Assembly: GCF_963921235.1 (NCBI RefSeq) | Contig: NC_086104.1 | Coordinates: 149,420,001-149,484,000 of the forward strand | Reading direction: 5' to 3' | Source: Mobula hypostoma | Lineage: Eukaryota | DNA: 64,000 bases | Part shown: piece by piece, positions 11,350 to 33,500 of the stretch | Layout: every line of letters begins with the position of its first letter | How positions within the stretch are numbered: position 1 is the stretch's first letter | Position numbers and translations under genes: made by a program | Notes under the pieces: generated by a model | Told to the model about the DNA's origin: nothing | The model's input: only the letters and a program-made list of their open reading frames with translations | The model's database searches: none

Positions 11350-14300
11350 ATTAAACACAAGCAGATGTTTATTGCACAAATCAGAGCAAGCTAAGGAATG
11401 GAAGACAACCACAGTTCAATACTTATACATCAGAGTACGCTGCAACAGTCAGATGAAGGAAGGCAACACACAAAAATTGCCATTAACAAATAGCCTGGCC
11501 AACATCACAGAAGCACTACATTTTTAGATAAAAGATATATATTTTTTTCTCATCAAAAATTAATTTTTAGAAACTTTTTCTCACCTTTTGAAACAAGTGA
11601 GTCCCCACTACCTATTTTTAATTCTGCAATTCGTGACTACAGTGGAAAATACCTGAGATTGCTACACAGTAAAATCATAAGAAATTAAAGGTGATGAAAG
11701 GACCCTTGCAGATACGACTGTACTTCCAGAACAGATACTTAAACTCAAAATCCAGTAATGAGTCCAAGTTTAGGTGGGTGTGTCTGTGTGCATACATACA
11801 TATCATTAAATTCCATGCTTCTGTATTCCAATCAAACCTGTGTTAATAAAATATAAAGTGTTCTATCATGCATATAGAATATAGATATTTATATATAAAA
11901 CTGCATATAGCCTGGTGCACTAGGACAACATATTTCACACGACCCCACAACTAGTAATAACAATCACCCATTCCTAAAGAACTCAACACAGATATTATCA
12001 CAAGCATATGTTCACGGGTCCTGCAACTTTAAACATTATGAATTATAATCGAAAGGAAGGTTTGCGACACAGGTTTATACAAGGAGAAAGGAGCAAGGGA
12101 TAATGGATGAACATACTAAGAGATAGCCACTAAAGTTAAATATACTCTGGACAAAACACCTGTGCTGAAGGCCACTATATTACGGCAGAGGGCAGTTAAA
12201 GCAGTCATCTGGTGTACAGAAAGCATGCATGCAAACACTGACCAGCCTCCTGATTTCCCATTCCGCAAATTTTATGGGGGGGGGGCAGCTGGGTGGAATG
12301 GAATGGAGTGGAAATGTTGGAGAGGGGAGCCTGGTTCTGGAACATTCCATGGCAGTCTCCGCACACACCACGGGGGTGGATAGAACGAGGAGGCTTTGCA
12401 ACTGGTCGTTGCTCCAGCATTCCCTCCCTCCTGCCCAACCCATACTCAACAGTGAGCTCGGTCTCCCAACCCAGAGACAGCGCAGCACTGGCCGTTGCGC
12501 AGTTCAGCATCCAACACTGAGATCTCAAGCACATTCCTCCCAAAAAAAAGCACAAACTGACTGCTTGGGTATCCATATCAGCTGCTCCCAATCTGAATGA
12601 GGAGGACACAGACCTGCTGCACCACAGGGCAGGGACGGTATGGGCAGTCTCCTCAGTGGATCGACCCCCACAGCATTTATCCCCAGACAGAAAAATCAGC
12701 ATTTTTAATGTCTCTGCAGTCCTACGTGGTGCAAGCAGAACGGAAAGAGTCTTGAGTAGGCTGAGAATCTGCTCGAAACAAAAATAATGTGTGTGGGGGG
12801 GGAGGGGGAATGAGTGCGAAAAGATGGAGAAAACCAGATTTTTCCCTCTGTTATCAGTTTGCCACACTGTGGGACTGATGGAACCCCGATGAGATAAAAT
12901 AAAATTACTGCTGTTCTATAGTTGCCTTCATTTTCTTGCCCACCCAACTCTCCACATTTTCCATGTGGTACGAAGGCTTTGCAATTGCAAAAAAAAAGGG
13001 GGGGGGGTGAAAAATCACAGAACACTGAACAGGCAGTTGATTAATCCAGTCACCCACTACCAACGTGTCACCGTGCACCACGTTCCATTTCTGCCCAGCA
13101 ACATTCTGTTCACATCAGGATGCAACCACACAGTCAGCATGGTGGACAATGTCCAATCTGCCTTGTCCAGGCTGTGCATTCGTCTTCTTACTCGACAAAT
13201 CCATGCATCAACTTGGAACGAGTCCAGAAACCAGGAGGGCAGGAGGATAGCATTAAAGGCTGGTGTTCCAGATTGTTCTACAATTGAGAAAACAATTTGC
13301 CGTCCAGTGTCTTGGAAACATTCCCCAATAATAAAAGTTTAGAGCCGTGGAGCCACTGGTTGGTAGAGTGAACAAGGCTACGCCAGGGTAGTTTGCAGTC
13401 AGATGTTGATGTACTTATGAGAATATGACATCCATTGTATCCAATTATCGATGAAGGATGGAAAGTTAACAGTGAACTCCAGCCAGTCTCATTCATTTTG
13501 TGTTCATCTCCTGGGTATGGGTCTCCCTCCTAAATCACAGCAATTAGAGTGTAACTCAGCAACACTTAGTAGAAGGTATCTATACCAAAACAAAGTATCG
13601 TTGCTGCATCGATTACTGTACAAGCGGCTAAGAACAAGCAGATTATTGATTCAGGTTCCAGCACAGCAGGTGTGTCTAAAGCAACATCGTAGTTCCATCT
13701 GACAGCGTGCATGCATCATCCAGCTCCTGAATTCTCATTCTTGTAGCCAATCCTTTCAGCTGTCCTGCATTTGCAGCACTGATTTACCAAGCAATCTTCA
13801 GCTTCAGTTGCTGAAGTCTTCAAATTCAGTCCTTTCAATCTCATTTAGCATACAAATTCATTTAGACCTCATTGCACTTTTTAAAAAAAATCTGCAGAGT
13901 ATGGCTCATGTTCAGAAATATCAGCGCAAATGCCATCATAAAGGGGCAAGTTACTGACATGCCAGTTTAAAAACCCATTGGACCTCCAAGTGCAGGGAAC
14001 AATCACCCAAGAAAACAATATGCTTATTCTTTTTTTTTTTGGAGTCACTCACCTTGCATGTTGCCTACCCAGTTTTCAGCAAAGCATGGTGGAATAATGA
14101 CAAATGCAATGAAGCCTTTAATCAGTCTACTATTGATACAAGGGTGTTCAGATTGGTCTTAAAAGGGAATTCATGAAATTGGTCACAATTTCTTACAATG
14201 CTCACCACTAAGATGAAATTCTTTATTTGGACAGTTCACTCTTGTTGAGCACACTAGGTTTGTTTCCAATGTACCTGTAAACCAAACAACCTAGTCTATA

Positions 14301-14455
14301 CAAGAACGATTCATACACAGTGAGGTCAGGTTAATAGTTTACTAGCAACAAGGGATCTCATTGTCCAGCTCTCCTGGTGAATCAGTGTGGTAAAATTATT
14401 TGAAATTATACTCCTGACAGTGATTGGTGGACTTCTCTTTTGGTGTCCTCAACTT
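11350..14455 (-). other. BAG4: Probable 3' UTR of the BAG4-like gene (about 3.1 kb)
   Basis: Stretch with no recognisable repeats after the stop codon; minus-strand AATAAA at 14222-14227 (proximal) and 11368-11373 (distal, followed by GU/U-rich sequence). Confidence 0.6.
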
Positions 14456-14953
14456 CTACCTTGCAATCTTCTCCAGTTTCTCCAGCACGCCCTGAATCTT
14501 GTGGACAGCCTCTTTACGAATCTGCCGTATGTGCTCTTGACCATTAGTTTCCACCGAATCCACTTCCAGAAGCTGCTTTGTCAGGAGTTCCTCCAGTAAG
14601 CGGTAAGTCTTGTCTCCTCTCTTCCCATCAAACTGATTCACCTCTGCCTCTAGCTGCTGTACGTTGCTCATGACTTGTTCTACTTTAGCTTGGCCTGGGT
14701 GCATGACAATGTCAGCCTGCTCCGTCCCATTGTTTGTGGCGCCAGCGGGCTTCTCTGCAGCACCCTTGTTTTCTGTGCGGGACTTGTACACAGTAGGGGG
14801 AGCACTGTATTCCATCCGTGGGCCTTGGGAAGTGTTTGGCAGCTGGTCTGGGGTTCGGGTTGGGAGGTAGCCCGTGGGCTGCTGGTCATTCCCTGGGAAG
14901 TTGTTGTTCAGGCGAGGCAGGGGGTCTTGGTGGTTTAGTGAATATGGAACATC
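14456..14953 (-). CDS. BAG4: BAG4-like exon 5 (last coding exon, BAG domain)
   Basis: Acceptor TTTTTAG|GAT; DVPYSLNHQD...MEYSAPPTVY...HPGQAKVEQV...RLLEELLTKQLLEVDSVETNGQEHIRQIRKEAVHKIQGVLEKLEKIAR*. The DSVETxGQ..RKEAV motif and the stop directly after the domain match BAG4 rather than BAG3. Confidence 0.95.
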   Translation of the reverse strand, partial: DVPYSLNHQDPLPRLNNNFPGNDQQPTGYLPTRTPDQLPNTSQGPRMEYSAPPTVYKSRTENKGAAEKPAGATNNGTEQADIVMHPGQAKVEQVMSNVQQLEAEVNQFDGKRGDKTYRLLEELLTKQLLEVDSVETNGQEHIRQIRKEAVHKIQGVLEKLEKIAR

Positions 14954-15174
14954 CTAAAAATAAAGTAACAGTCAGAACCACTTTAACACACCTAACACCT
15001 GAATAAATACAATTTAGCTCTTAAGAAATGGATTTCAAAGTTCAAAGTAAGTTTACCATTGAAGTATGTATATGTCACTAAATACAACCCTGAGATTCAT
15101 TTTCTTGCAGGTATTCATAGTAGAACAAAGAAATACAATTGATTCAATGAAAAACTACACAGAGTGACAAACAA

Positions 15175-15475
15175 AAAGGCAGCATCCATCATTAAGGACA
15201 TGCCCTCTTCTCATTGCTACAAGAGCTTGAAGGCACACATTCAATGATTCAGGAACAGCTTCTTCCCCTCTGCCATCTGATTTCTGAATGGACATTGAAC
15301 CCATGAACACTACCTACTCTTTTTAATTTCTATTTTTGCACTACCTATTTAATTCAACTATTTAATATATATAACTGTAATTCACATTTTTTCTATTATA
15401 TACTGCATTGAACTGCTGCTGCAAAGACAACAAGTTTCACAACACATGCCAGTGATATTAAACCTGATTCTGATA
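15175..15475 (+). mobile_element. Rex/L2-type LINE 3' end (family ending gccagtgatattaaacctgattctga)
   Basis: FRNSFFPSAI-coding 3' end with a shared tail. Other copies at about 24635-24975(-), 26200-27095(+), 38825-39415(+), 39675-40445(+) and 43505-44790(-). Confidence 0.75.
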
Positions 15476-16659
15476 CAACCAATGTGCAAAAGATATCCTG
15501 CGCAAATATAAAAAAAATTATAAGTAACAGTTGTGTCCTTGAAAGTGAATCCATAAGTTATGGAATCAGTTTACTTATTCTATTTGGAGATGCAGCACGG
15601 CAACAGGTTCTTCTGGTCCAGTGAGCCTGTGCTGCCCAATTAATCCCACGTGGCCAATTATCCTACTGACCTGTACGTTATTGGACTGTGGGAGGAAACC
15701 GGAACACATGGGAAAAACCCATGCGGTCAAAGGGAGAATGTACAAACAGCGGCGGGAATTGAACCTGGGTCACTGGCGATGTAATAGCGTTATGTTAACC
15801 ATTACACTCCCGTGCTGCCCTTAAATGACATTTTATGTCCATGGTTTATCAGTCCTGAAGAAGGGTCTTGGCCCGAAACATTGACCCTTTAGTCGGAATC
15901 AGAATCAGGTTTAATATCACTGGCATATGTCATGAAATTTGTTGCTCTGCTACTGCAGTACATTGCAATACATAATAAAAAACTGTAAATGATAGTAAGT
16001 AAATATAGTTTAGTTCATTAGTTTGAGATACAGCTCCTTTACAGGTCTTTCCAGCCTAACAAGCCCATGCCACCCAATTATACCCACGTGACCAATTAAC
16101 CTACTAAATCCTACGTCTTTGGAATTTCAGGATTGTTATTGGTGCTTTGTGAATTTTATTTTGCTATTAGGTTTATCTAGAAGGCTTCCAGTGGCTGAAG
16201 AAATCTGAAGCTGATGTTAAATGGGCTGGATTAGGGCAATTGTGTCTGTATTTCAGGGGTAGAACTTCCATTGCGAAAGATGTCAGCACATATTACACTG
16301 GAATCTCATCCAAAAACCACCTCATGACAAACCTCTTGTGCAGACTTGTCTTTGAATTTTCAGAGCACATGGATTAAGAGCAGTAGTCACTCTGCCCTTG
16401 AATTTGTTCTGCCATTTCATAATCCCATGGAAACAGAACTCGGAGGGTAACACAAGATGAAGGTTTGACCTGAAACATTTACCGCCCACTTCCTTCCCCA
16501 GATGCTGCTTAACCTGTGGAGTTCCTGCAGCAGCTTGTTCCTCTGAAGAGGGCTTGATAGTGTAGGTGTAGAATTGATGACTGTTATGATTGGGATGTCC
16601 AGAAACAAGGACTTAAAATATGGATTAGCCATTCTAACCAGAGATAAGTAGTTATTCAT

Positions 16660-16841
16660 AAGCACAAGAAAGTCTGCATATGCTGGAAATCTAAAGCAAC
16701 ACATGAACTCAGCAGGTCAGGCAAAATCTATGAAAATGAAAAAAATAGTCGACGTTTCAGGCCGAGACTGTTCGACTGCTTATTCATTTCCATAGATGCT
16801 GCCTGGCCTGCTGAGCTCCTCCAGCATTTTGTGTGTGTTTC
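16660..16841. mobile_element. Palindromic Penelope-derived mini-element
   Basis: Two inverted copies of the PLE 3' terminal unit; flanked by ATAAGTAG(T/A)TATTCAT at 16644-16659 and 16842-16857. Confidence 0.8.
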
Positions 16842-17371
16842 ATAAGTAGATATTCATTAGGACAGGAATAAATGTGTGAAACTCTCTACCAAAGAGAGCT
16901 GTAGAGCTATATATTCAAGACAAAGCACAATGTGTAATTGGGTTTAAAAGATTTGGATCCAAAGGTTCCTGCGGGAAAGAAGGGTTGATATAAAATATCA
17001 GCTATAGCCTTACTGAAGGGAAGACAGACACAAACAAGTGAATAGCCTATTCCTGCTTCTACTTCTTAGGTTCTTAAAAACAGTACTGGAAGAAAATGAG
17101 AGAAGGAACTCAGAGGACAACAGCTTTCAATGATTAAGGAACAGATACTGGGATGGACACTTGCTTTTTGTTCTCAGATTCTTCAAGCCTTGAAGCAAAT
17201 TTCTCCCACATCTGATGGGAAGATGCAGAGATCGTTATCATTTCACCAAAATTTGTGTGTCATTTCTATGGTGAATCATTTTCCTTGAGAACATAGAACA
17301 TGATAGTACAGTTCAGGCAATTTGGCTCACGAGGTTGGCCGACCTTTTAACCTACTCCGATATCAATCTAT

Positions 17372-17452
17372 CCAAGGTTTCCCAACCATTTTTTATGTCA
17401 TGGACCCCTACCATTATCCGAGGGGTCCATGGACCCCAGGTTGGGCATACCT
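17372..17452. mobile_element. About 80-bp MITE, probably hAT-type
   Basis: Terminal inverted repeats resembling CAGGGGTTCCCAACC; a second copy lies at about 42183-42253. Confidence 0.65.
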
Positions 17453-18286
17453 GACCTAACCCTTCCCTCACGTAGCCTTCGATTTTTCTATCATATATTG
17501 CATATCGAAGAGCCTCTTGAATGTCCTTAATGCATCTGCCTCTCCCATCACCCAACAGAGCATCCCACACATTTAACACAGTGTAACAAAAACCTATGTC
17601 TGACATCCCCCCTATACTTTCCTCTAATCGCTTTAAAATTCTATCCACTTGTATTAGCCAAGTGTATTAAAGCTTATTTATCACATGTACATCAAAACAC
17701 GCAGTGAAATGCATTTTTTGTGTTGACAATCAACACAGTTGAACATGTGCTGGGGGCAGGTTGCAAGTGTTGCCACACATTCCAGTGCCAGGAAAGCTAC
17801 AATGCCCACAATGTTCAGCAGAACAACACAGAACAAAACGAGCAACAAAACAGTATTTGCAAAACAAGCGCCATACCTCCCTCCCACCCACATACCTACA
17901 TACACTGTCTGTTAACTTCTGACTTCTTCAACTAGTGGTCCCCAAAGGACTTGGACTCAGGTTTGCAGAAGCCATCTATTCCCTGGGAAAGTCTCTAGCT
18001 ATCTACTTGATCTATACCTTTTATCATCTTATACACCTCTCATTCTCCTTCGCTCCAAAAAGCCCTGGCTCACTCAACCTATCCTCACAAGGCATGGTCT
18101 CCAATCCAGGCAACATCCTGGTAAATCTCCTGCGTACTCTCTAAGACCTCCGCATTCTTCCTATAATGAGCCTTTACCAATTCTATCAGAAAAAAAGCAA
18201 AACCCACAAGCTCTCCCTGTACACAACTCATTTAAAGCCACATCTCCACCAACCTGTTTTTGTGCAAGGGCCCTGTATTTACTTAC

Positions 18287-18622
18287 CTTTTGTTCATAAA
18301 CAGATGGTGATGGACTGAGTCTTGGCCAGCTGGGTGTTGGTCCGGAAACAACGTTACCCCCGAAAGCCGACATCGGATGACTGAACTGCTCTGCAGATGA
18401 CTGCAGTCCCGGAACTCGGACTTGGGCCCAGGGGTCATGGGACGGTACTCCTGCTGTGGGAAGAGCGGACGCCTGCATCGAAGGTTGCCAGGGCTGGGAC
18501 TGTGGGCCGGGCGCAGGCTGATGTGGAGAAGGATATAGGGGCTGTTGAGGGGCAGAACCTGGGTTTCCAAAGTGATACTGAGATGACGTTACTGGGTATG
18601 GAGACTGTTGATCATACAGTTC
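18287..18622 (-). CDS. BAG4: BAG4-like exon 4 (Pro/Ser/Gln-rich, 112 codons)
   Basis: Acceptor TTTCTCACTAAATAG|GAA, donor AAG|GTAAGT, open phase 0-0: ELYDQQSPYP...HDPWAQ...PSWPRLSPSPSVYEQK. Confidence 0.9.
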
Positions 18623-19669
18623 CTATTTAGTGAGAAACAAAATGCAGGTGGTTTATTACCAAAAGTTAAGCTTACAGCCAAAGCTTAACAGCATAAATAA
18701 CATTCAAATTATTCGTTAGCAATCAACCCATGCAAACCATGCAAGTAAGTCATTCAAACCAGTTGCCAGAACAGTATTTAGGTACTTTACCTACTGTATA
18801 GATTAAGGATTAATTTTATTTGTCACATGTATATCAAAACAGTGAAATATGTCATTTACATCAGATCAACATGTGTTGCGCTGGGCAGCCCACGTGCCAA
18901 GTGTCACCATGCTTCTGGAGCCAACAGAGTATGGCCATAACTCACCAACCCTAACTGTGTGTCTTTGGAACGTGGGAGGAAACTAACATCTGGAGGGAAC
19001 CCACATGGTTATGGGGAGAACATGCAAACTCCTTACAGGCAACAGTGGAATTGAACCCGGGTCACCTGCGTGTAATATTGCTATGTTAGCCACTACACTA
19101 TCATGCCGCCCCCCCCAGGCTACTGTGGATTAAAGAGGCAGCATAACATAGAACACTTCAAAGAGACAAAAAGAGTTAAAGTGATAGGAAACAAAAATAC
19201 GATGAACACAGATCGATACTTGTGACTTGTAGTGACCTTCCGTCAAAAGAAGCGGCAAGCAAAAAGCTGCAGTTGCTGAGAATCTGAAATAAAACAAATG
19301 CCAGTCATCTGTGGAAAGAAAACGTGAACATTTCAGGTTTGAAGGACCATTCAGAAAGGGTTAGATTTGATTCTTATATTATCTGAAGCAAGGAAAGGAA
19401 ATCAGCATGAACCATGTTGCGGCTATTCCATGGTAACTATGTAGAAACTGGGCAAGCCTTTCCAGAGAGTAAAAGTGCACCACTTTTCCTCTTACCAAGC
19501 AGCCATCACAATGACCTGCTCTCATGAGGCTTCCCAGTTACAGATTTCTAAACTTTTGTGCAAACAAGCACACAGGCAGCAGAAAGTTGTCTCTTTGAAG
19601 TATTTCATGTTATCTGCACAAGAATGAGTTAAGCAAATTTGAGGTAAAAACAGAAAATACTCAAAACAC

Positions 19670-20220
19670 TGATTTGGAATATTGTGTGCAGTTTTGGTCA
19701 CCTACCTACAGGAAAGTTGTAAATAAGGTTGAAAGAATAGAGAGAAAATTTACAAGGACATTGCCATGTCTGAAGGATTCAAGTAATAAGAAAAGGCCAG
19801 ATACCTTAGGACTGTATTCCTTAGAACATCGGCAATTGAGAGGAGATTTCATAAAGGTATACAAAACTATGAGGGGTATAGATGGAGTAAATGCGAGGGG
19901 GATTTTTCCACTGAGGTTGGGTGAGACTACAACCAGATGTCATGTCTTAAGGGTGAAAGGTGAAAAGTTTAGCAGAACACAAGGGAAACTTCTTCACTTA
20001 GTGGGTCGTGAGAGTGTGGAATTTGTTGCCAGTGCAAGCTGTCTGTGTGAGCTCAATTTCAACACTTAAGAGAAATTTTGATGGGTACATGGATAGTAGG
20101 GATATGGAGGGCTATGATCCCGGTTCAGGTCATTGGAGTAGGCAGTTTAAATGGTTTTCAGCATGGACTCGATGGGCCAAAGGGTCTGTTTATATGATGT
20201 CCTTCTCCATGACTATGACT
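19670..20220 (+). mobile_element. CR1 LINE 3' fragment
   Basis: EYCVQFWSP...LGLYSLE..LRGD motifs; (ATGACT)n tail. Confidence 0.88.
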
Positions 20221-20771
20221 TTCAGCGGGTCAGATAGAATCTGCTTCAAGTAAAGATCCGTCTTTCCCAGTGAGAATGAAGGGTCGCAGCACTTAACATC
20301 AGCACTTCCCAAACACTATGTTAAGGATCAAGGATTGACTTTACATGCTACATACATGTATTAGGAATATGCTGTGCAGTGTGGGCATGGCATGCATCAA
20401 AAATCAATTCAACAAAGAATAAAGAACTATATGAAAAGTAAATTTAGAGGTTAAAGTACAGATATGGAATAAAATATGCATGAATATCAGCATTATTTAC
20501 AATGTAAACAGCATTTTATAAGGAATGGTTTCAAGTGTTTATTCTGCAGTGACTGAGATAATAATGGGGGGGGGGGGGAACTAGCTAGGGGGGGAATGGC
20601 TGTCTGACCTTAAGTGTTTCCAGTATTTTCTGTTTCAGATTTCCAGCATCTACAGTCTTCTGAGATGCATAAAAAGATTCAAGTCTCACACACTGCACTA
20701 TGCTGTCACCCGTTTCCATTACTCTGTGGCCACATGCCATATTTTAAACATCATCCATTCTTAACACCCAC

Positions 20772-21095
20772 CCGCTGTCCTTGGGCTGGTGGATAAGACT
20801 GATGAGCAGGCGCCTGTGACCTCGCCAGCAGCCCCTGGCTGGGTGGGCCGGTTTGTGAGTGAGCCCACTGTGCAGAGGAAGCATTCCCATTGGACGGAGG
20901 CCTCGGCAGCCCTGCTTGCTGGGTAGGGTGCTGCTGGTGCGGAGGGTGCTGGCGGTAGGTCTGCTGTTGGTGACTTTCGCTCGGTATCGGATCACCCCGC
21001 ATGTTCTCACTTGGCCCTGGAGGATACCAAGAGTTCCCCTGGACGGGTCGCGGAGATGATGCTCGTCCAGAGGAAAACACACCATTGACTAAGCC
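20772..21095 (-). CDS. BAG4: BAG4-like exon 3 (108 codons)
   Basis: Acceptor CCTTATTTCAG|GGC, donor CGG|GTGGGT, open phase 0-0: GLVNGVFSSG...WYPPGP...HQSYPPAQGQR. Confidence 0.87.
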
Positions 21096-21677
21096 CTGAA
21101 ATAAGGTAGTATTTATAGATTATATATATTCATATATTCAGAATCACATATTCAGAATTATATATTCAGGAGCGCATTCACTCCTATCATTGAAAATGGC
21201 ATCAATGCAGAGGAATACATTTAATAAAGAAAAGTAACAATCTGCAGTTACTACACTTTACACATTAGAACCTATGCCATGACCTCGCTGAGTTCCAGCC
21301 TATTGAGATCTCCACATGGTATCCTGCAATTGTAAAGCATTGCCCTTTGTGAGCTCACGAGCCACAGCCTGTTATCAGTCAACAGGCATCACACCTCACT
21401 GGCAGAGCTGGAGACCGCTGGGAAAGCTGGAGGCCCACTGCAAGTCCATTGGAGGATTGTCCCATCATTGGAGAACTGCCTATGTAGGTGGGAGGAAGGG
21501 AGATAGGATACGAGCAGGATTATGCCATATGAGCCCTTCAAGTCTGCTTTGCCATTCCATCATGGCTGAATTATTATCCCTCTCAAATCCATTCTCCTGC
21601 CTTCTCCCTTGTAACCTTTGACACCCTTACTAATCAAGAACCTATCAATCTCTGCTTTGAATATATCCGATTCCACA

Positions 21678-22285
21678 TGTAGGGTTTTCAGTAATATTAA
21701 CTGTAATGTTAACTGTTAAATGCTAATAATAAAATGGCTTCTCTGTAGTGTTATAATGAAATGGCTTCTCTGTAATGTTAACTGATGAGGTAATGTTCTT
21801 TGTAGCTGAAATGTTTGGGTTATAATTATAGATAACAGGGAACTAACAAATGTTATTCTACCTGTATGTGTGGGAACCTGAGGGAGTGCGGGGGAGAGGA
21901 GAGGCGAAGAGGAAGGACATGCGGGAAGCGATCTGGTAGACCACCGTGGTTGGTCCCAGTCCGAGGGTCGAGGAGTTCAGAGGAGATCGAATGGTGGAGA
22001 GAAGACCTCTGTTTCTTGAGCTCCAAGAATTGTGCACGAACTGATTAACTCTGATAAGTGTGGCGCCTTTTTCTTTTATATCTGTTTCCCTACTAACCAC
22101 ATAGTCACAGTAGGATTTACAAAGTGTAATCATTTAATCGTACATTGTGTACTGTCTGATGTTTTATGTTGTGGGGTTTGTCCCGGGGTGCATTACACAG
22201 CATCTATGCAAATGTGAGACTCAGTTTGGCGGGCAGACAGCGATTTCCCCTAGATGAACAGGAGTTCATAAAGCTGTGTGTTACA
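21678..22285. mobile_element. Solo LTR inserted into a minus-strand CR1 3' end (about 21500-22490)
   Basis: TGTAG...TTACA termini with a 4-bp duplication CACA (21674-21677 and 22286-22289); the CR1 sequence resumes seamlessly after it. Confidence 0.75.
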
Positions 22286-23909
22286 CACAGATTCACCACT
22301 CTCATGTGAATTCCTCCTCATCTCTATTCTAAAGGGGCATCCTACTATTCTGAGGCTGTGCCCTCTGGTTCTAGTCTTCCCCCAAACATCCTTCCACATC
22401 CACTGTGCCTAGACCTTTTAATATTCAGCAGGTCTCAATGAGATCTCCTCTCATTCTTTTAAAATGCAATGAGTATAGGCTCAGAGCTTAAAAATAAACA
22501 TTTATCCTTAGTTTGTGCTGATTGTTAACCCAATCAATGTTTTTCACTCTATGTTTCAGTGTACATTTGATAAATAAATGATTCTGAATCTAAAAGGTGG
22601 GAAACAGATAACGTGTGGACTTGGCCTGGATTCTGAGAACATGGACGAAGATAGAAAAGTAGAGTGAACAAGGCGGAGGGAAGAATGTGAAAGGTGCTTT
22701 GAAAACCAAGGTGTTAAGAGATATTAGGAATAGCTGGATTTGTAGGATTAGTCACCTTTCTGGGGGTGGGGGGGCAGGGTAAACGTCCCTTCTGCGTGGA
22801 CACTGCACGATCATCATTCTAAGAAACAGCTTAATGCAGGAGACGGAAAAGGATTTGAACGGTACTTTGGGTGAGCTGAAGTGAAGACTCACAGGCTTGT
22901 GTGAGGGAGAGGATGACAGGGTCGGGAGTCTGGATCAGCGTTGAGATCAGAAACCATCCATTTCTGCTCAAAACAACAGGCGAGAGAAATGGGATCATTG
23001 ACAAGGCTGATGTGGAAAGTGGCAGCAACTCTGATTCTAGTTGTTGGGAAGTAACCCTTTCACACATTCCCTTGTTCCAGTGTTTCAGATGTGCACTGCA
23101 GATCCCAAACAACATGTTCGGGTGTCCTCCTCAGTCATCAACCTCTTTCATGTCCACCCCCCCACCATCTCTGCCTCCATCCATCTGTCACTGTCTCCCT
23201 GCACCCCTTCCCTACCTGGCACAATCTTATTCTCAAATCTACCATTCACCTTGTACTCCTTTCTCACCACTCCCCTTGTCTTTATACTGGCCATCTTCAC
23301 CTCTCCACTCTCAGTCCTGAGGCAATGTTTCCACCCGAAGTGTCAACAGTTCCTTTCCTCCCACACAGATTCAGCTTGACCCGCTGGAGGTTGTTTCTCT
23401 GGATTCCAGCATCTGCAGCCCCTCTTGTCTCCAGGGTGTTCAGCCCAGCCAACTCAGCCAATTACAGATTGAGTGGCATTTACCAAGCGACTACTACCAC
23501 TGCTCTCATCACCGGCACATTCAGCTTCCAAACAAAGGATTAGAGAACAGTCCCAGCTTTACAATTTGATTGAATTGTTCCTGAGGGTGCAACCACCATG
23601 TGGACTGATCATCATCTGTTCATCTCGAGAACGAATCATCGAAGTGCAGCAGAACAAAGGTCACACTAGTCACTTCCTTTACTTGGCTCAGCCCTTTTGA
23701 TGCAAAGTTTCCACCCAATAAACTGCTTCACAGTCCTGACTCTCCAAAGAGCACATCAGCACTGCCCGGAGACTGTGGCTCTGGGCTGTCCTGTGATGAT
23801 TTTCCAAGCAAACAGACAAAAATAGTCAGCAACACCAAGCCACAAGATACTCGTGTACAAACAGTAAAGCTGTTGGGACAGGAAAATCTTGACACACTAT
23901 TCAAAATTA

Positions 23910-24385
23910 CAAAATTTTATAAATTCTTAGTTAGGCCACATCTGGAGTGTTGCATACAGTTCTGGCCACCCCAGTACAGGAAGGATATTGAGGCTTTGGA
24001 AAGGGTGCTGAAGAGGTTTATCAGGATGCTGCCTGGTTTAGAGGGCACGTGCTATCATGAGAGGCTGAACAAACTTAAGTTGTCTTCTCTGGAACGGCAG
24101 AGGCTGAGGGGAGATCTGATAGAGGTTTATAATATTATGAGAGGCAGAGATAGAGTAGGTAGGGAATATCCGTTTCCCAGGTTTGAAATGTCTAATACCA
24201 GAGGGCTTGCATTGAAGGTGAGAGGGGTTAGGTTCAAAGGGATGTGAGGGCTAAGTTTTACTTTTACTCACTCAAGAATGGAGGATTCCTGGATTGCACT
24301 GCCTGGTACAGTAGTACAGGCAAATACATTAGACTTTAAAGAGATGAATGTGAGGAACGGCTTCCTCCTGCGCTGTACTGTTCTA
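23910..24385 (+). mobile_element. CR1 LINE 3' fragment
   Basis: LVRPHLECCIQFWPPQYRKDIEALERV...RLRGDLIEVY. Confidence 0.88.
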
Positions 24386-25104
24386 ATTCCAGATTTTGTA
24401 ACGTGCCCAAAAAGCAGGCCATGTTCAAAAACACACTTGTGGTACAGGAATAAAGCGGCCCCCTTCTTCTCCAGGGAACTCAACTCAACCAGTAAATGAG
24501 GGAGAAGAGTAACAAATTAGCAACCAGATTATTCTAATTCTGTCCTCAGTCTCCAGTGTCTGTCCAACCATGGTGACAACTCACCAACCAACATTGGTGA
24601 CTGTCGGCCCAGAGCACTGACCGAAAGAACGTTTATCAGAATCATAATCAGGTTTAATATCACTGGTATATGTCATGAAATTTGTTGTTATGCAGCAGCA
24701 GTACAATGCAATATATGAAAAATAAAAACTGTAAAATACAGGAAATATATATTTTAAAAAGTTAAATAAGTTTTGCGAAGAGAAAAAAAGTAGTGAGGTA
24801 ATGTTCATGGGTTCAATGTCCATTCAGAAATCGCATGGCAGAGGAGAAGAAGCTGTTCGTGAATCGTTGAGTGTGTTTCTTCAGGCTCCTGTGTCTCCTC
24901 CCTGATGGTAGCAATGAGAACAAAGTCTGACCTGGGTGATGGGGGTCCTCAATGAATGGACGCTGCCTTTTTGAGCAGTTCACTGTTTTGCATCAAGTTA
25001 ACAGGTTTCAAAGGTTAAAGATTAGTTTCATTTGTCACACCTACAACAAAACAAACAGTGTAGTATGCCATTTGCATCAAATCAAATCAACAAGGATTTT
25101 TTTT

Positions 25105-25790
25105 AGATTATGAGGCCACGCAGTCCTCTTTTATTGTCATTTAGTAATGCCTTTGCATTAAGAAATGATACAATGTTCCTCCAGTGTGATATCACAGAAA
25201 CACAAGACAGACCAAGACTGAAAAACTGACAAAAACCACATAATTATAACATATAGTTACAACAGTGAAAGCAATACCGTAATTTGATAGAGAACAGACC
25301 ATAGGCACGGTAAAAAAAAGTCTCAAAGTCTCTCGAAAGTCCCATTATCTCACGCAGACGGTAGAAGGAAGAAAATTCTCCCTGCCATGAGCTTCCAGCG
25401 CCACAAACTTGCCGATGCAGCATCCTGGAAGCACCTGACCACAGTCCGACTCTGAGTCTGTCCGAAAACTTTGAGCCTCCGACCAGCCCTCTGACACCGA
25501 GCACCGAGCACCATCTCTGCCGAGCGCTTCGACCCCGGCCCCGGCCGCCAGTAACAGGTGAAGCTGAGGATTTGGGGCCTTCCCTTCGGAGATTCTCGAT
25601 CGCATGGTAGCAGCAGCAGCAAACCGGGCACTTCAGAAGTTACTCCAGATGTTCCTCTGTGCTTCTCACATCTGCCTCCATCAAATCAGAATTGTGCACG
25701 GCCCCTACTTACAAATACCAATATCATTCACTGGAGAAGCCGTGCGCGCTGCGTCACGCTGCCATCTTCTCCTCCCTTGGATTGCGCTTG
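25105..25790 (-). mobile_element. Unclassified non-coding retroposon with (TAATC)n tail
   Basis: Closely similar copy on + at about 44270-44660 ending AATAAAAGAGGACTG...(TAATC)n. Confidence 0.65.
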
Positions 25791-26960
25791 GGACAGCGCA
25801 CAAGTGTCGCCACTTTTCCAGTGGTGACAAAGCACGTCTGCAACTTGCTAAATCTAAACATATGAAGTGGAATGTGGGAGGAAAAACTTAAACCCTGCAA
25901 TAACAAAATCATGATAAGAATTTTCAATTCTTCTCCATTAGGGAGATGATTTCCCTTACACTCAAAGTGTGCCTTGTTTAGTGGCTTTGAGTGATAGAAA
26001 GACATGTAACAAGGGATTCAGTTGCTTTACAGGCTGAATATTGAGAAGAGAGCTGGTTAAGGATCCCATCATTTATCAAGGTCCTAGTTATACAGTTGCC
26101 CTCCCCACTCATGTTTTGCACTAAATATACACACATATACATGTATACAAATATACACATACATGTAGACTATATCTTATTGAAATTTAAATACGTCAGT
26201 GATAATAAACCTGAGGAGATTTGATATGTCACCAAAGCTACTTGCAAACTTCTACACATGTACCGTGGAGAGCATTCTAACTGGCTGCATCACTGTCTCG
26301 TACAGGGTAGGAGGACTGCTACACAGGATCAAAGAAGCTGCAGAGAAGTGTAAACTGTGTCATTTCCATCAAGGCACTAGCCTCCGAGTATCCAGGAATG
26401 CCTCGAGGAGTTGGCGTCCATTATCAAGGACCCCCATCACCCAGGTCAGACCTTGTTCTCATTGCTATCATCAGGGAGGGGGTACAGAAGCCTGAAGGCG
26501 GACACTCAATCATTCAGGGACAGCTTCTTCCCTTCTGCCATCAGATTTCTGAATGGGCAGTAAACCCATGAACACTAACTCAATATTTTTTTTCCCATTT
26601 TTGCACTACTTATTTTGTGTGTGTGTGTGTGTGTATGTATGTGTATATATATATATATATATATAGTGGTATCCGTTAGTCACGTGAGACCATGGATTTG
26701 CGCCTTGGAAGGTTTCCAGGGTGTAGGCCTGGGTATGGAAGACCAGCAGTTGCCCATGCTGCAAGTCTCCCCTCTCCACGCCACTGATGTTGTCCAAGGG
26801 AAGGGCACTAGGGCCGATACAGCTTGGCACCAGTGTCGTCGCAGAGCAATGTGTGGTTAAGTGCCTTGCTCAAGGACACAACACGCTGCCTCAGCTGAGA
26901 CTCGAACTAGCGACCTTCAGATCACTAGACTTGACACCTTAACCACTTGGCCACGTGCCA

Positions 26961-26992
<32 letters not shown>

Positions 26993-28568
26993 CAATTCTG
27001 TTTTCCCCCATATTTATCATGTATTGCATGGTCCTGCTGCTGCAAAGACAACAAATTTCACAACATATGCCAGTGATATTAAATCTGATTCTAACTATCA
27101 GACAATTAACTCTCTGATATTTTAGAATTCCTGACTATTTGGTATCTGGCTCACGCACTCCAGGCATCACCATTACACTTAATAGGGCTCCATCTCTGGA
27201 ACCCCTTGATTCACTGAAAAGTTCAATACTCTTACATACAACAAAAAGTGAATTAAAAGCCCATTGGTGTATTCACAGGAACAAATCCTAATAATAACAA
27301 GGTTGTTATAGTCGGGAGTGATAATGGGAAAAAGCTCCTACTACCTATTAATTGCTCCCAAAAGCGTACACCTCAAATACCCTCTGACAACCAAGTCCAG
27401 CTCGCAGCTTTCACATGTAGCTTAGCTACTAAACCCGGTGGAACAGTTTCTACTGACAGGAGAAGGGGCAAGGGCGGGTTACTGGTGCCTTAAAACCAGT
27501 CACTTTGGGTAGATGGGGCTCGACAGCCGTGGTTGGCAGTTCATCCAGAAGGAAAACTCTGACCTCAAAGCTCCGCTGCCTTGTGGCTATACCTACCCAC
27601 AGGGAAGGCTTCTGGAGTAAACCCAGAGGGAAAATGTGGAGCTGGAGTCCCTATGTCAGTCCTAAGTTGAGTTCAACGCTGACTGGCAACTTTTGCAAAC
27701 CTGCTGGTACCAAACTGTATTGGTCTCTGCTGTTCCTTTGGTTTCATCAGATGCGTGGAGAAGGCTACATGGGCAACAGTTTGCTCTCCATATCGTACTG
27801 CCCAGGCTTGCGTATCTGGACAGCTAGGACTCAACGTCCGTGGTTGACTCTGACTGATGAATGCCTCACTCACTCAATACCTAACAGTCCAGAAAAGCTG
27901 CCAGTGTTCAAAGTCCCAAATGCACCAGGCTATTGACATTCTGCTGAGCAAGACAAAACATTTCAGATGAAGGGCGAGTAAAAGTCTAATAAAACACAAA
28001 ACAGAAACCTCCACTCTAGAGAAAAATCTCCATCAATGCTTTACAAATTCCCAATGAACTGTAGGGATTTGCAGCTTAGGTACGAGCCTTCAAAACTTTT
28101 CAACCTATAAATCACAAAATATCAACCTGAAAGATTACATTTCAGGTTGATGATCTGAAATCTCCCACTGATGCTGCCCTCCAGTGTTCGCTCCCTGGAA
28201 GGCAAGCTGGATTGCCTCCGTCTGCGGCTGGCCCAGCGTGATGAGGAACTGTTGCGTGCTTATTCTTAAATATGGCTCCTGGACAAGATCCCACACACCA
28301 ACAGTCTTCAGACCATGCCATCCAGGAACTTGTGCTAATATTCTTTTGGGCTATTATAACTATAGGTACTGTGTGTGTGATTACATGTACTGTTTTCACC
28401 TTGGCCCCAGAGGACGTTTTATTTAGCTGTATACATGATTATGGTTGAATGACAATTAAACTTGAACTTCTGTCAGGACTGTTCTCTTCCAGATGTTGAT
28501 ACGTATTCTTCTGTCTGAAGCTATTAACTAGATTACAACAGTTTTGAAGAGTGAAAAATGGCACTTAC

Positions 28569-28679
28569 TTGATGAGGCATTTGATGGTCCATCATTTGAG
28601 AATAGTTATTCGGATATGGACTAGGTTGATGCCCGGTGGGATACCAGTAATTGGAGGCAAACCCTGGGTATGGCATTTC
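28569..28679 (-). CDS. BAG4: BAG4-like exon 2 (37 codons; absent from the ORF track)
   Basis: Acceptor CTTGCCTTCTAG|GAA, donor CAA|GTAAGT; EMPYPGFASNYWYPTGHQPSPYPNNYSQMMDHQMPHQ resembles the recalled human BAG4 segment EQPPYPSYNSNYWNSTARSRAPYPSTYP. Confidence 0.9.
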
Positions 28680-28959
28680 CTAGAAGGCAAGAGCAAAATC
28701 AGACATAGGGCCTGGTGAATTCACACGGTCTACAGATCTGGTAACCCAACAAAGGGAGTTGAAAATAGTTACAGAAGAGGGCGTGCTGTGAAGTACACCC
28801 AAAACTAGGGATAATGTATTTATTGACTGAGGTACAATGAATCAAATTAGGGCTGAACTTGAATTTAGAAAGATCTCAATAAAGCAAACACAATTTTTAC
28901 ATGCCCCAACAGGTTGATGCAGCATCTAAAACCCAGGTTCACCCTTTCACTATGGACCC

Positions 28960-29268
28960 TATATAGGCATCCGTTCGTCTTGTGAGACTATGGATTTGCA
29001 CCTTGGAAGGTTTCCAGGGCGCAGACCTGGGCAAGGTTGTATGGAAGACCAGCAGTTGCCCATGCTGCAAGTCTCCCCTCTCCACGCCACCGATGTTGTC
29101 CAAGGGAAGGGCATTAGGACCCATACAGCTTGGCACCGGTGTCGTCGCAGACCAATGTGTGGTTAAGTGCCTTGCTCAAGGACACAACACGCCACCTCAG
29201 CCAAGGCTCGAACTAGCGACCTTCAGATCACTAGACGAACGCCTTAACCACTTGGCCACGCGCCACAG
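28960..29268 (-). mobile_element. tRNA-derived CORE-like SINE with TSD
   Basis: Minus-strand A box TGGCCAAGTGG, B box GTTCGAGCC, core GTGTCCTTGAGCAAGGCACTTAAC; TSD CTATGGACCC (28950-28959 and 29269-29278); second copy at about 26665-26960. Confidence 0.85.
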
Positions 29269-29397
29269 CTATGGACCCATGAGAATGTATTTTGCCCTCC
29301 AGAGCAGGCGTAGTGAATGAGACCAAGATGGTTAACATTACAACAATACAGGCCCTTCAGCCCTGATGTTGTTCTGATCTGTTATAACGGTTGTTAT

Positions 29398-29867
29398 ATA
29401 CACTCAGTGACCACTTTATTAGCTGCCTCCTGCATTCAGAGGTGCTCTTCTGTATACCACTGCTGTAAGTTACTGTCAGCTCCTGACAGCTTGATTGAGT
29501 CTAGACATTCTCCTTTGATGGCTTTCATTAACAAGGCATTCTCACCCACAGAACTGCTACTCTCTGAATTTTTTTTTGTTTTTTTGCACCATTCTTCATA
29601 AACTCTAGAGACCGTTGTGAAAATCACAGGAGAGCAGCAGTTCTGAGATACTCAAACCACCTCATCTGGCACCAACAATCATTTCAGGGTCAAAAATCAC
29701 TTGGATTCCATTTCTTCCCCATTCTGATGTTTGATCAAACAACAACCGAATCTCTTGATCGTGCCTGCATGCTTTGATGCATTGAGTTGCTGCCACATGA
29801 TTGACTGATTGAATATTTGCATTAATGGGTAGGTGTACAGCTGTACGTAACAAAGTCATTGAGTGTA
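29398..29867 (-). mobile_element. Tc1/mariner deletion derivative
   Basis: TIR-like CACTCAGTG(A/G)CCACTTTATTAG after a TA; remnant TTVSRVY..WC transposase HTH; homologous to 53619-54155. Confidence 0.75.
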
Positions 29868-30137
29868 AATTTAAGAAAGATCTCTTGATCAGTCAAGGCA
29901 TGAAGTAATAATGCAGGACCATTCTTGGGTCGACCTGTCATGAATTTACTAAATGGCAAGACAGTTTCAAGGGCCATTCAACTGGCCTACTCCTTCTATG
30001 TCCTGATGTTACAAATAACCTGCGTTAACGGAAATGTGCAACCCCCCGCCACCAACTACCCGAACCAAAAAAAAACTGCTTGTACCTCAATGCAGTGAAT
30101 GTACCTCACCACTTTACAAGATGTCAGTACAGAAATT

Positions 30138-30397
30138 GGGGCAGCACAGTAGCATAGTGGTTAGCACAACGCTTTACAGTACAGGCGACCGGGGTTCAAT
30201 TTTCACCACTGCTGTTCCCCCTGGACTTCCGCTGGGTGCTTCAGTTTCCTCCCACAGTCCAAAGACCCACCGGTTGGTAGGTGAATTGGTCACTGTAAAT
30301 TGTCCTGTGATGAGGCTTGGATTAAATCGGGGAATTGCTGAGTGGCATAGCTTGAACAGCCAGAAGGGTCTATTTCACACTGTATCTCAATAAATAA
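30138..30397 (+). mobile_element. tRNA-derived V-SINE-type SINE
   Basis: A box TAGCATAGTGG, B box GGTTCAATT, V-type core, (TAAA)n tail. Confidence 0.85.
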
Positions 30398-31659
30398 AAA
30401 CAAATAAGCAATATCTTAAACTGACTGGAGCTCTGTAATTAGTGGTGTTCCATAGGGATCTGTGCTGGGGCCTCTGCTGTTTGTGATATACACAAATCAC
30501 CTGGATGAAAAGGTAGATGGGTGCATTAAATTTGCAGAAGATAGCAAGATTGGTGGAGTTGTGGACAGTATAGAAGGCAGGCAAAGAATACAGTGTGATA
30601 AAGATCAGTTGCAGATACGGGCAGAGAAATGGTAGGTCTGATACGCATCAGTTTCTCCATTTTTAATTGTTAGAATTAACCTAGGAGCAATAAGTAGCCA
30701 ATTACTTCATAGGCAGCTATTCTGGTAAGAATCAGTCTGTCCATAATGGCAAATTGGGCCTGGTACAGTAACTTCAAGAGGAGAATGGGGGCCACATGGA
30801 TCACACTAAAGCAAACTGTCTGAGCAAAATTTAAACCGCACAGAATACTTACCCTCGTCTCAAACTGTCTGAGCAAAATTTAAACTGCACAAAATACTTA
30901 CCCGCGTTTCAAGGTATGAAACGCTACAGGTTTCTCTCCCTCACCTCTAAATATATTTACTCCTGCCCCTTCAGCATCAAATATCAAAATACACATCTCC
31001 AAGTAGGAGTTTATCATAGTTAAAAAGAACGTATCGCCTCTTCATGTTGCTTTTGAAATTGCTTCAGAAGGATAGAGTATATTGACTTCGTCCTGACCTT
31101 CACAGGAAACACAATGAGCTCCCTGGCCCTATGATCTGAGGTGATCTGCCCCAAGATCTGAACCTGGCATTCAGACTGATTAAACCAATGTGTTTGTGAA
31201 CACCACTTCCACTTTTCCTGATATCTTTCCCCAATAAACAAGCTGACATTCATGCAAGGAAATATTATCATTAACATGAAAGCAAATATTAAGTTATTTT
31301 CTTCAGTTAAAGCTATGTGGGTTGCCCAAAGTTGCACCTCCACTGTGCAGCCCCCTCCAAAACCTCTTCCATTTCACTCACAATTCTCTCAACTTCCACT
31401 GCCTCCATCCACCCATTCCTCCCTTCCTCCACAGCTGCACTCCCACACTTCCTCATATCACACCTCCAACCTGCTCATTGCTTTCTTTACTCCGTGACTC
31501 CCACTACAGCCTCAACTTCCCCAAATTCCCCCACTCTTCAAACCGACTCGTGTCTACACTCACTTCCTAGACACCCCACTGCCCCCACCTCTCTCATCAC
31601 ATATTTCTTTATATTTTGTCTATACAGTCCCTCCATCTTCAATCTCTCCTCCCACTCTC

Positions 31660-31990
31660 CTCCCTCCCACCTCGGCCCCTCTCCCCATCTCCTCCTTACA
31701 CCCTCTCCCCCCCCTCCTTTTACCCCATCTCCCCTCCCCCTTGTCCCCTCTCCCCAGTCTCCCTTGCCCCTCCCCGTCTCCCCTTGCCCCCCTCCCCACT
31801 CCTCGTCTCCCCTTTGACCCCCCTCTCCCCAGTCTCCCCTTGACCCCCCTTTCCCCACTCCACCTTGATCCCCCTTTCCCCACTCCACCTTGACCCCCCT
31901 TTCCCCTCTCCCCCTTGACCCCCTCTCCCCAGTCTCCCCCTTGACCCCCCGTCCCTCCTTTTATCCCTTTCTCCCCACCCCCTTCCCTCA
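31660..31990 (-). repeat. G-rich (sense strand) low-complexity tandem tract at the 5' end of BAG4 intron 1
   Basis: Repeated CCCCTTGACCCCC and CTCTCCCCAGTCTCCC units on +. Confidence 0.9.
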
Positions 31991-31991
31991 C

Positions 31992-32108
31992 CTTCCGGAC
32001 CCGCGGGTCGTTCCATGTAGTAGTGCCGGTGTTGTGGTCGATGTAGTAGGGCCAGCCGCTGTCAGGATCTCGCTTCATCTCCCAGCCGCGGGGAAGAGTG
32101 GCAGCCAT
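31992..32108 (-). CDS. BAG4: BAG4-like exon 1 encoding a WW domain (39 codons)
   Basis: Kozak GCCATGG; [39 protein letters not shown]; donor AAG|GTGAGG, phase 0, in frame with exon 2. Both Trp residues, the aromatic doublet, Asn and Pro of the WW fold are intact. Confidence 0.9.
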
Positions 32109-32270
32109 GGCCTCACTCACAGGACTCAGCCACTCCGGCCCCTGCCCGCTGACCGGCGGCCGCACCAGCCAATCGGCCCCAATGCTTCCTCAATTCTTCC
32201 GGCACGCTGGCCAATCACGGTGGGGCATCGGAGGCGGAACGCCGCGCCCACTTCCTCTAACATCCGCTGA
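32109..32270 (-). promoter_or_regulatory. BAG4-like promoter/5' UTR with CCAAT boxes and ETS-like site
   Basis: CpG-rich; three CCAAT motifs (about 32169, 32179 and 32211) and CACTTCC (about 32249); no TATA box seen. Confidence 0.6.
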
Positions 32271-32289
32271 CAGACAGGCAGTGACAGGG

Positions 32290-33500
32290 TCACACCCACT
32301 GACTCACACTCAGGGGCTGAAACCCACACCCATTGACACACTCACACTCAGTGACCGACACACCCACTGACACATTCATTCATGCTTCCTGATACACATG
32401 TACCCACAGGCACACTCACTTACTCCCACAGATACTCTCCCATCCAGAGATTGACACACTCACACCCACTGACAGACTTACTCACACCCATTGACACACT
32501 CACCCACCACCCACTGACATACTCGATCACATTCAGACACTGACACACTCACCCACCACCCATTGACACGCTCACACTCAGACACTGACACACTCACCCA
32601 CCACCCATTGACACACCCACACTCAGTGACCGACACACCCAATGACACATTCATTCATGCTTCCTGATACACAGGTACCCACAGACACACTCACTTACTC
32701 CCACAGATACTCTCCCATCCAGAGATTGACACACTCACCCACCACCCACTGACACGCTCGCTCACACTCAGACACTGACACACTCACCCACCACCCATTG
32801 ACACACTCACACTCAGTGACCGACACACCCAATGACACATTCATTCATACTTCCTGATACACATGTACCTACAGACACAATCACTTACTCTCACAGATAC
32901 TCTCCCATCCAGAGATTGACACACTCACTGATACACTCACACCCATTGATACACTCACCCACCACCCACTGACACACTCAATCACACTCAGACACTGATA
33001 CACTCACCCACCACCCATTGACACACTCACACTCAGTGACCGACACACCCAATGATACATTCATTCATGCTTCCTGATACACATGTACCCACAGACACAC
33101 TCACTTACTCCCACAGATACTCTCCCATCCAGAGATTGACACACTCACACCCACTGACAGACTTACTCACACCCATTGATACACTCACCCACCACCCACT
33201 GACACACTCGCTCACACTCAGACACTGACACACTCACACCCACTGATACTTACATCTAGTGACACACATATACACCTAGTGATTCACCCACTGACACACA
33301 CAGCGACTCGCTCATTCACATCCACTGGCATACTCACTCACACTCGGAGACTGACACGCTCACTCACACCCCAGTGATGCACTCGCTCACATTCAGTGAC
33401 ACCCACAGGCACACTCATTCAGACCCACTGACACACTTGTGCTCGGAGACTGACACACACACACACAACCAGAGATTACACGCATTCACACGTAGACACT
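32290..33500. repeat. CA-rich higher-order minisatellite
   Basis: A roughly 120-bp module (ACTCAGTGACCGACACACCC...CCATCCAGAGATTGACACACTC) recurs at about 32341, 32617, 32807 and 33026, with variable ACACACTCACCCACCACCC sub-repeats between. Confidence 0.92.

Follow-up and report, generated by a model that had tools for sequence, protein, structure and literature searches.

An intact WW domain, probably ancestral, in a BAG4/SODD-type gene of the devil ray Mobula hypostoma

BAG4/SODD is the least understood BAG co-chaperone, and reviews give its N-terminal half no domain. A gene of the devil ray Mobula hypostoma encodes a protein that carries a WW domain near its N-terminus and a BAG domain at its C-terminus, and it raises the question of whether such a protein is BAG3 or BAG4. 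The gene lies in a stretch of 64,000 nt (NCBI RefSeq assembly GCF_963921235.1, contig NC_086104.1, positions 149,420,001 to 149,484,000 of the forward strand), which is called the window here and to which all coordinates refer. Among the human BAG proteins, the WW domain, the IPV motifs, and PxxP are assigned to BAG3 alone in reviews (PMC4753570, PMC5478690). The ray gene is probably a BAG4/SODD orthologue with an intact ancestral WW domain. This identification is based on BAG4-type motifs, a tail of four residues after the BAG domain, the exon structure, and a decayed WW domain at the same place in the BAG4 proteins of bony vertebrates.

The gene is on the minus strand, from 32108 to 14456, and consists of five exons, all in phase 0, with GT at every donor and AG at every acceptor. 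The exon lengths are 117, 111, 324, 336, and 498 nt, the last one including the stop codon, and they constitute a frame of 1386 nt, or 461 codons and a stop. The earlier note, made from the letters of this DNA, had proposed these five exons and a protein of WW domain, linker, and BAG domain without IPV motifs; frame reading and Pfam confirmed this model. The features of the gene are as follows (dN/dS, ratio of nonsynonymous to synonymous substitution rates; UTR, untranslated region).

31992-32108, minus strand: coding exon 1, the WW exon, 39 aa; start codon at 32108-32106, donor GT beyond 31992; supported by Pfam WW and the RNA joint to exon 2.
32004-32096, minus strand: WW domain proper, residues 5-35; Pfam PF00397 with 54.6 bits, modelled strands, dN/dS of 0.09 versus skate.
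32109-32153, minus strand: 5' UTR part of exon 1, minimum extent; RNA contigs end at 32127, 32139, and 32153.
28569-28679, minus strand: coding exon 2, 37 aa, includes the PYPGxxSNYW motif of BAG4 type; exon profile and RNA joint to exon 1.
20772-21095, minus strand: coding exon 3, 108 aa, Pro/Gln-rich linker; RNA joint to exon 4 and contig coordinates.
18287-18622, minus strand: coding exon 4, 112 aa; its linker sequence includes the DPWA motif; joined to both neighbouring exons in RNA.
14456-14953, minus strand: coding exon 5, 165 aa and stop, with the YSAPPTVY motif and the BAG domain; Pfam and RNA joint to exon 4.
14468-14683, minus strand: BAG domain, a short three-helix bundle, residues 387-458; Pfam PF02179, match to the human BAG4/SODD structure, and model.
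11354-14455, minus strand: 3' UTR of ~3.1 kb, extent inferred; in the 4508-nt RNA contig the coding part of exon 5 ends near record position 3103 and ~3102 nt remain.

The transcript data are assembled contigs of four runs from one study, and the RNA label of these runs is a guess. The introns are skipped in the contigs, and thus the contigs derive from spliced RNA. In the four runs, 96% of the sampled exon 5 words are present. When aligned to 28400-32400, each of the four runs shows a contig in which 28679-31991 is missing, and this gap has GT..AG ends on the strand of the gene. The WW exon is therefore joined to exon 2, with no mismatch, as the earlier note had predicted. Two of these junction contigs, with lengths of 4508 and 4488 nt, extend to 32127-32153. 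Because contigs extend upstream of the start codon to 32153, the 5' leader is at least 45 nt. The alignment of the same contigs to 14900-20899 skips 14953-18286 and 18622-20771, which correspond to the exon 4-5 and 3-4 joints. These two joints and the exon 1-2 joint come from direct contig alignment, while the exon 2-3 joint was read from contig coordinates. Record positions 3937 and 4261 of the 4508-nt contig mark the starts of exons 3 and 2, respectively, and exactly 324 nt lie between them. This is the length predicted for exon 3, and thus the 7.5-kb intron that separates it from exon 2 contains no additional exon. The contig sequence of ~3.1 kb beyond the stop codon indicates a long 3' UTR. 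At 18352, all four runs have T where the assembly has C (plus strand), which leads to V275I in exon 4; the substitution probably reflects allelic or individual variation. The summed contig depth is very high in the intron segments 15100-15300, 16700-16900, 18100-18300, 28936-29340, 29470-29870, and 30140-30410. These segments, covered by many short contigs of 95-99% identity, are transcribed interspersed repeats and not exons of the BAG4 gene.

The WW domain that Pfam detected in exon 1 is complete (54.6 bits, E-value 1.1e-14, model positions 1-31 of 31). Exon 5 encodes a BAG domain in its last part (65.8 bits, E-value 5.1e-18), and exons 2-4 gave no Pfam match. The closest solved structures to the BAG part were human BAG4/SODD (86.7 bits), mouse BAG3 (80.0 bits), and then BAG5. 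Those closest to the WW part were the PPxY-binding WW domains of NEDD4-family ligases, ITCH, WWP1, and YAP. The two Trp residues ~22 residues apart, the YY aromatic pair, the His, the Thr, and the final Pro are all kept, so that the ray WW domain has every residue needed by PPxY-binding WW domains. An AlphaFold2 model was built from the alignment of 11 cartilaginous-fish proteins, whose first sequence is that of Mobula birostris and differs from the window protein at 3 positions. It shows a three-stranded WW sheet at residues 9-31 (predicted local distance difference test score, pLDDT, 74-88) and three BAG helices at residues 383-461 (pLDDT 87-96). Residues 40-379 between them are disordered (pLDDT <50) and constitute a Pro/Gln/Tyr-rich linker of ~340 residues. 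The comparison of devil ray with skate gave dN/dS values of 0.09 (WW exon), 0.06 (BAG domain), and 0.19 (linker). The value of the WW exon is near that of the BAG domain and below that of the linker, and thus the WW domain is kept by purifying selection.

The tripeptide [IVL]P[IVL] does not appear anywhere in the 461-aa ray protein, hence there is no IPV motif. The ray protein has the sequence TGYLPTRTP (window ~14800-14830, residues ~320-328) ~65 residues ahead of the BAG domain, and its counterpart in the sevengill shark is TGYIPVQTP at residue 352. Both resemble the third motif of BAG3, YIPIQV, which has an equivalent position, and could be a further remnant of the common ancestor.

To distinguish BAG4 from BAG3, 11 BAG4 proteins from cartilaginous fishes, 116 BAG4 proteins from bony vertebrates, and 120 BAG3 proteins were compared. 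Four signatures of BAG4, PYPxxxSNYW, DxWA, YSAxPxxY, and DSVETxGQ, are all present in the ray protein. They are found in 9-11 of the 11 cartilaginous-fish BAG4 proteins and in 45-95 of the 116 bony BAG4 proteins, and in none of the 120 BAG3 proteins. The tail after LEKLE is 4 residues in both BAG4 groups (86 of the 86 scorable bony BAG4 proteins), and 60-82 residues in BAG3. In the ray protein the stop likewise follows 4 residues past LEKLE. Both the signatures and the stop right after the BAG domain had been noted from the ray sequence before. The strict small-heat-shock-protein (small-HSP)-binding motif GY[IV][PS]IP[VI] shows the reverse distribution: it is in all 120 BAG3 proteins and in none of the 127 BAG4 proteins (0/11 in cartilaginous fishes).

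Profiles were built exon by exon from the cartilaginous-fish proteins and run with no composition filters and with shuffled controls. The exon 2 profile matched bony BAG4 with 8-28 bits at the matching place in 6 of 9 species. The maximum for shuffled sequences was 4.9 bits, and every BAG3 stayed below 2 bits. The BAG-domain profile scored 98-112 bits for bony BAG4 versus 85-100 bits for BAG3. A phmmer search of the linker alone against the BAG3 and BAG4 sets with composition filters on showed no match outside cartilaginous fishes, which is due to the filters. The exon boundaries point in the same direction. The cyprinid BAG4 gene shares the boundaries of the ray and skate genes: exon 1 ends just before PYPGY..NYW, and the last exon begins ~85 aa ahead of the BAG domain. 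The coelacanth BAG4 matches the skate protein over 89% of its length, and the skate protein stands there among BAG4 proteins only.

Trees were built from two alignments, one of the BAG domain alone (85 columns) and one of the final 170 residues (173 columns). The ray gene is inside the cartilaginous-fish BAG4 clade (support 100/98), and outside both the gnathostome BAG3 clade (99/98) and the clade of lamprey and BAG3 proteins (97/90). As far as sequence comparison goes, motifs, profiles, and trees agree that the ray gene is not BAG3.

A separate BAG3, which the earlier note had suggested looking for, is found in the same genome. A search with Callorhinchus BAG3 revealed canonical BAG3 in 13 cartilaginous fishes, including M. 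hypostoma. The M. birostris BAG3 is 595 aa long and falls in the same cluster as that of M. hypostoma. Both Mobula BAG3 copies are on a chromosome of ~67 Mb, while BAG4 is on a chromosome of 162-171 Mb. Mobula BAG3 has two or more IPV motifs, including IPIPV and ISIPV, and a long tail past the BAG domain. Callorhinchus BAG3 has four exons, with a gene for three RNA recognition motifs upstream on the opposite strand, which is how TIAL1 and BAG3 are arranged in human. Only two genes of the WW-BAG type, BAG3 and the BAG4 gene, turned up in any cartilaginous fish.

The WW-bearing BAG4 is distributed across rays, sawfish, sharks, and the chimaera. Proteins named BAG4 with both Pfam WW and BAG domains are observed in Pristis, Hypanus, Hemitrygon, Heptranchias, Pristiophorus, Cetorhinus, Rhincodon, and Callorhinchus. 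The genome of the skate Leucoraja has the same five phase-0 exon structure as the ray gene, and its copy carries the label "BAG3-like". The anticipated mislabelling as BAG3 by automated pipelines is thus real for the skate, while RefSeq names the ray gene BAG4.

In contrast to those of the cartilaginous fishes, the BAG4 proteins examined from bony vertebrates have no intact WW domain. The intact WW pattern is found in 11 of 11 cartilaginous-fish BAG4 proteins, none of 116 bony BAG4 proteins, and 119 of 120 BAG3 proteins. Even at E-values up to 10, Pfam detected no WW domain in eight BAG4 proteins, those of coelacanth, lungfish, sturgeon, eel, cyprinid, caecilian, newt, and marsupial. Among the 120 listed homologues of coelacanth BAG4, from bichirs, gar, teleosts, amphibians, reptiles, birds, and mammals, no WW domain is recorded except for that of the skate. 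The exon 1 peptides of bony BAG4 nevertheless keep the skeleton of a WW domain, as in the bichir sequence ..DPSWEMQ..NPKVNWAHY..SSWPAP. The profile of 18 bony exon 1 peptides aligned with that of 8 cartilaginous-fish ones at all three Trp positions (hhalign P = 9.5e-5, 28 columns). These observations support a WW domain ancestral to BAG3 and BAG4, which would have decayed in the same exon of bony BAG4.

Exon 1 is surrounded by tandem arrays. A C-rich array of ~25-nt units occupies 31676-31955 and begins 36 nt beyond the exon 1 donor. Long CAC-rich arrays with units of 22-220 nt are observed 350-1150 nt upstream of the start codon (32450-33250). The strong negative GC skew at 30-34 kb is due to these C-rich and CAC-rich arrays.

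Several observations speak against the identification as BAG4 and are considered together here. The first ones concern the neighbouring genes. In a cyprinid, LSM1 is head-to-head with BAG4, 0.8 kb upstream, and human LSM1 and BAG4 have the same head-to-head arrangement. There is no LSM1 exon within 32 kb upstream of the ray gene, nor within 10 kb upstream in the skate, and motif and tblastn searches of the window for LSM1 and DDHD2 showed no match. The database entries for the Mobula BAG4 and BAG3 loci list no neighbouring gene within 10 kb. In a genome this large, the window ends too early to exclude an LSM1 neighbour, and LSM1 linkage is a supporting feature, not a defining one. The downstream neighbour is the following.

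5629-5725, minus strand: first exon of INPP5F/SAC2-like type, 32 codons long and followed by a GT donor; it sits in a CpG-rich kilobase, the only one in the window.

This exon is on the same strand as BAG4, 8.7 kb beyond its stop codon. The skate counterpart (L002:31889-31984) is identical to it at 28 of 32 residues, lies 7.8 kb past the skate BAG4, and is annotated as a gene start. In human, INPP5F is the gene that follows BAG3. The ray exon may represent a second INPP5F-type gene beside BAG4, mirroring the pair of BAG3 and INPP5F. Such a copy would fit the BAG3 and BAG4 regions being duplicates of one ancestral region.

The remaining points come from the trees and the alignment. The backbone of the BAG trees is a zero-length three-way split, and the sister relationship of cartilaginous-fish and bony BAG4 was not recovered. 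Holding all BAG4 sequences as one clade costs 0.00 log-likelihood units (p = 0.50 in the approximately unbiased, AU, test). The AU test does not reject the ray clade joined to BAG3, either (p = 0.27 and 0.19). The alignment of the decayed WW domain is short (28 columns) with an hhalign probability of 59%, which is supportive rather than conclusive.

These points leave room for hidden paralogy. The gene could be a third WW-BAG duplicate kept only in cartilaginous fishes, where the true BAG4 would have been lost, and its likeness to BAG4 would come only from shared divergence from BAG3. The zero-length split at the deep node and the lack of LSM1 within 32 kb fit this scenario, as does the INPP5F-like gene start, which is conserved in the skate and is a type of neighbour not described for bony BAG4. 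However, the BAG4-only motifs are absent from every BAG3, lamprey, and mollusc protein. The identical tail of 4 residues, the exon 1/2 boundary and the start of the last exon shared with cyprinid BAG4, and the decayed WW domain at the same place in bony BAG4 are also against it. Just two such genes are seen in any cartilaginous fish, and the long match of coelacanth BAG4 to the skate protein stands among matches to BAG4 proteins only. We consider this scenario unlikely, and retain it mainly because of the INPP5F-like neighbour.

The second alternative accepts the gene as BAG4 and questions the age of its WW domain. BAG4 could have been already WW-less, and the ancestor of cartilaginous fishes could have regained the domain from BAG3 by exon shuffling or gene conversion. 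With 41 columns, the capture of the WW domain from cartilaginous-fish BAG3 is not statistically rejected (AU p = 0.25). In the best WW tree, however, the BAG4 WW clade (95/91) does not fall within the BAG3 WW clade of gnathostomes (80/84). The BAG4 WW domain has the states GWEM and GWPYY in common with lamprey and mollusc proteins, whereas BAG3 has GWEIKIDPQTGWPFF. Exon 1 of bony BAG4 is itself a decayed WW domain, indicating that the domain predates the split, and BAG3 and BAG4 agree in the position and phase of the intron that follows the WW exon. The capture is thus very unlikely.

It is likely that BAG4 began as a BAG3-like WW-BAG protein, and that cartilaginous fishes keep the WW domain under selection, so that their BAG4 would link Hsp70 to PPxY partners without small HSPs. 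The N-terminus of bony BAG4, including the human one, would then be a decayed remnant of the WW domain.

It is extremely improbable that the gene is a second, diverged copy of BAG3 that has shed its IPV motifs and tail and been mislabelled as BAG4. The build of WW and BAG domains, the "BAG3-like" label in the skate, and the INPP5F-like neighbour are compatible with it, but the gene is outside the gnathostome BAG3 clade, has BAG4 motifs and no BAG3 motifs, and has five exons versus four. The BAG-domain profile also scores higher for bony BAG4 than for BAG3. The records without the WW exon (Scyliorhinus, the partial Mustelus record, Chiloscyllium with another first exon, and Narcine isoform X2) would fit a gene-prediction artefact or an assembly chimera. 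This reading is rejected as practically inconceivable on the RNA evidence, since all exons are connected in spliced contigs of ~4.5 kb from four runs and the joints are free of mismatches; the skate genome also has the same structure. The reading as a BAG4 orthologue that kept an ancestral WW domain, which the earlier note had reached, is therefore supported: exon 1 is spliced, the gene is not in the BAG3 clade, and another BAG3 exists in the genome.

BAG4/SODD (silencer of death domains) binds the ATPase domain of Hsp70 and the death domains of TNFR1 and DR3. BAG3 and BAG4 would descend from one WW-BAG gene, whose WW domain would be kept in cartilaginous-fish BAG4 and whose exon 1 would have decayed in bony vertebrates. 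By homology, ray BAG4 is predicted to be a nucleotide-exchange co-chaperone of Hsp70/Hsc70, in which the C-terminal BAG domain would bind the ATPase (nucleotide-binding) domain of Hsp70 and speed ADP release. Binding of this domain and faster ADP release are the role of short BAG domains of the BAG3-5 type (PMC4753570). From its conserved residues, the WW domain is likely of class I type and would dock the chaperone on PPxY-type proline motifs. The WW domain of BAG3 docks on SYNPO2, LATS1/2, AMOTL1/2, TSC1, and PDZGEF2 (PMC5478690). The ray protein would likewise bring Hsp70 to partners with proline motifs. Recruitment of HSPB8 or HSPB6 is not expected, since the IPV motifs are lacking. We infer Hsp70 binding, PPxY binding, and the lack of small-HSP binding from sequence.

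The 461-aa model is 100% identical to RefSeq XP_062913103.1, BAG4 of M. hypostoma, and thus the gene model and the name are already public. The M. birostris BAG4 entry differs from the window protein at 3 positions. The domain hits are also precomputed in databases. A full-text literature search, with most subscription journals outside its coverage, revealed no publication that describes a WW domain in the BAG4 of any animal. What is new is the interpretation, a modest evolutionary point: an intact WW domain under selection is the rule in cartilaginous-fish BAG4, a remnant of it is seen in bony exon 1, and its loss is placed at the stem of bony vertebrates. The gain lies in this interpretation and not in gene discovery. 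The WW domain of cartilaginous fishes and the remnant in bony exon 1 give the N-terminal region of BAG4 an origin and date the loss to the bony-vertebrate stem. The ray gene shows the state of BAG4 before this loss. It is also a natural separation of the two N-terminal functions of BAG3, with WW docking present and small-HSP recruitment absent. The naming of the skate copy is a warning for annotation.

Ray BAG4 is not a new kind of protein, and its features can be compared with those of three known groups. The lamprey proteins named BAG3 or BAG3-like (340 aa) resemble it in having the WW domain, the linker, the BAG domain, and the 4-residue tail, with no IPV motif. In contrast to ray BAG4, they are shorter, have no BAG4 linker motifs, and group with gnathostome BAG3 on a long branch.

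BAG3, whose counterpart in the fly is starvin, shares the N-terminal WW domain and the C-terminal BAG domain. The ray WW domain is identical to that of a primate BAG3, from chimpanzee, at 23 of 33 residues, close to the 23 of 34 estimated before for human BAG3. The intron after the WW exon is another common feature. On the other hand, BAG3 has the IPV motifs and the long tail of 60-82 residues, both of which are absent from the ray protein. The ray gene has five exons, while BAG3 has four in Callorhinchus and in human (PMC5478690).

Mammalian BAG4/SODD is similar to the ray protein in the short C-terminal three-helix BAG domain, the 4-residue tail, the four motifs, and the disordered Pro/Tyr/Gln-rich linker. 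The difference from bony-vertebrate BAG4 is the intact WW domain, which none of the 116 proteins has. In comparison with the textbook mammalian BAG4, in which BAG is the sole domain, the ray protein has an extra WW domain; that textbook composition is a description of the mammalian protein, not a criterion of descent.

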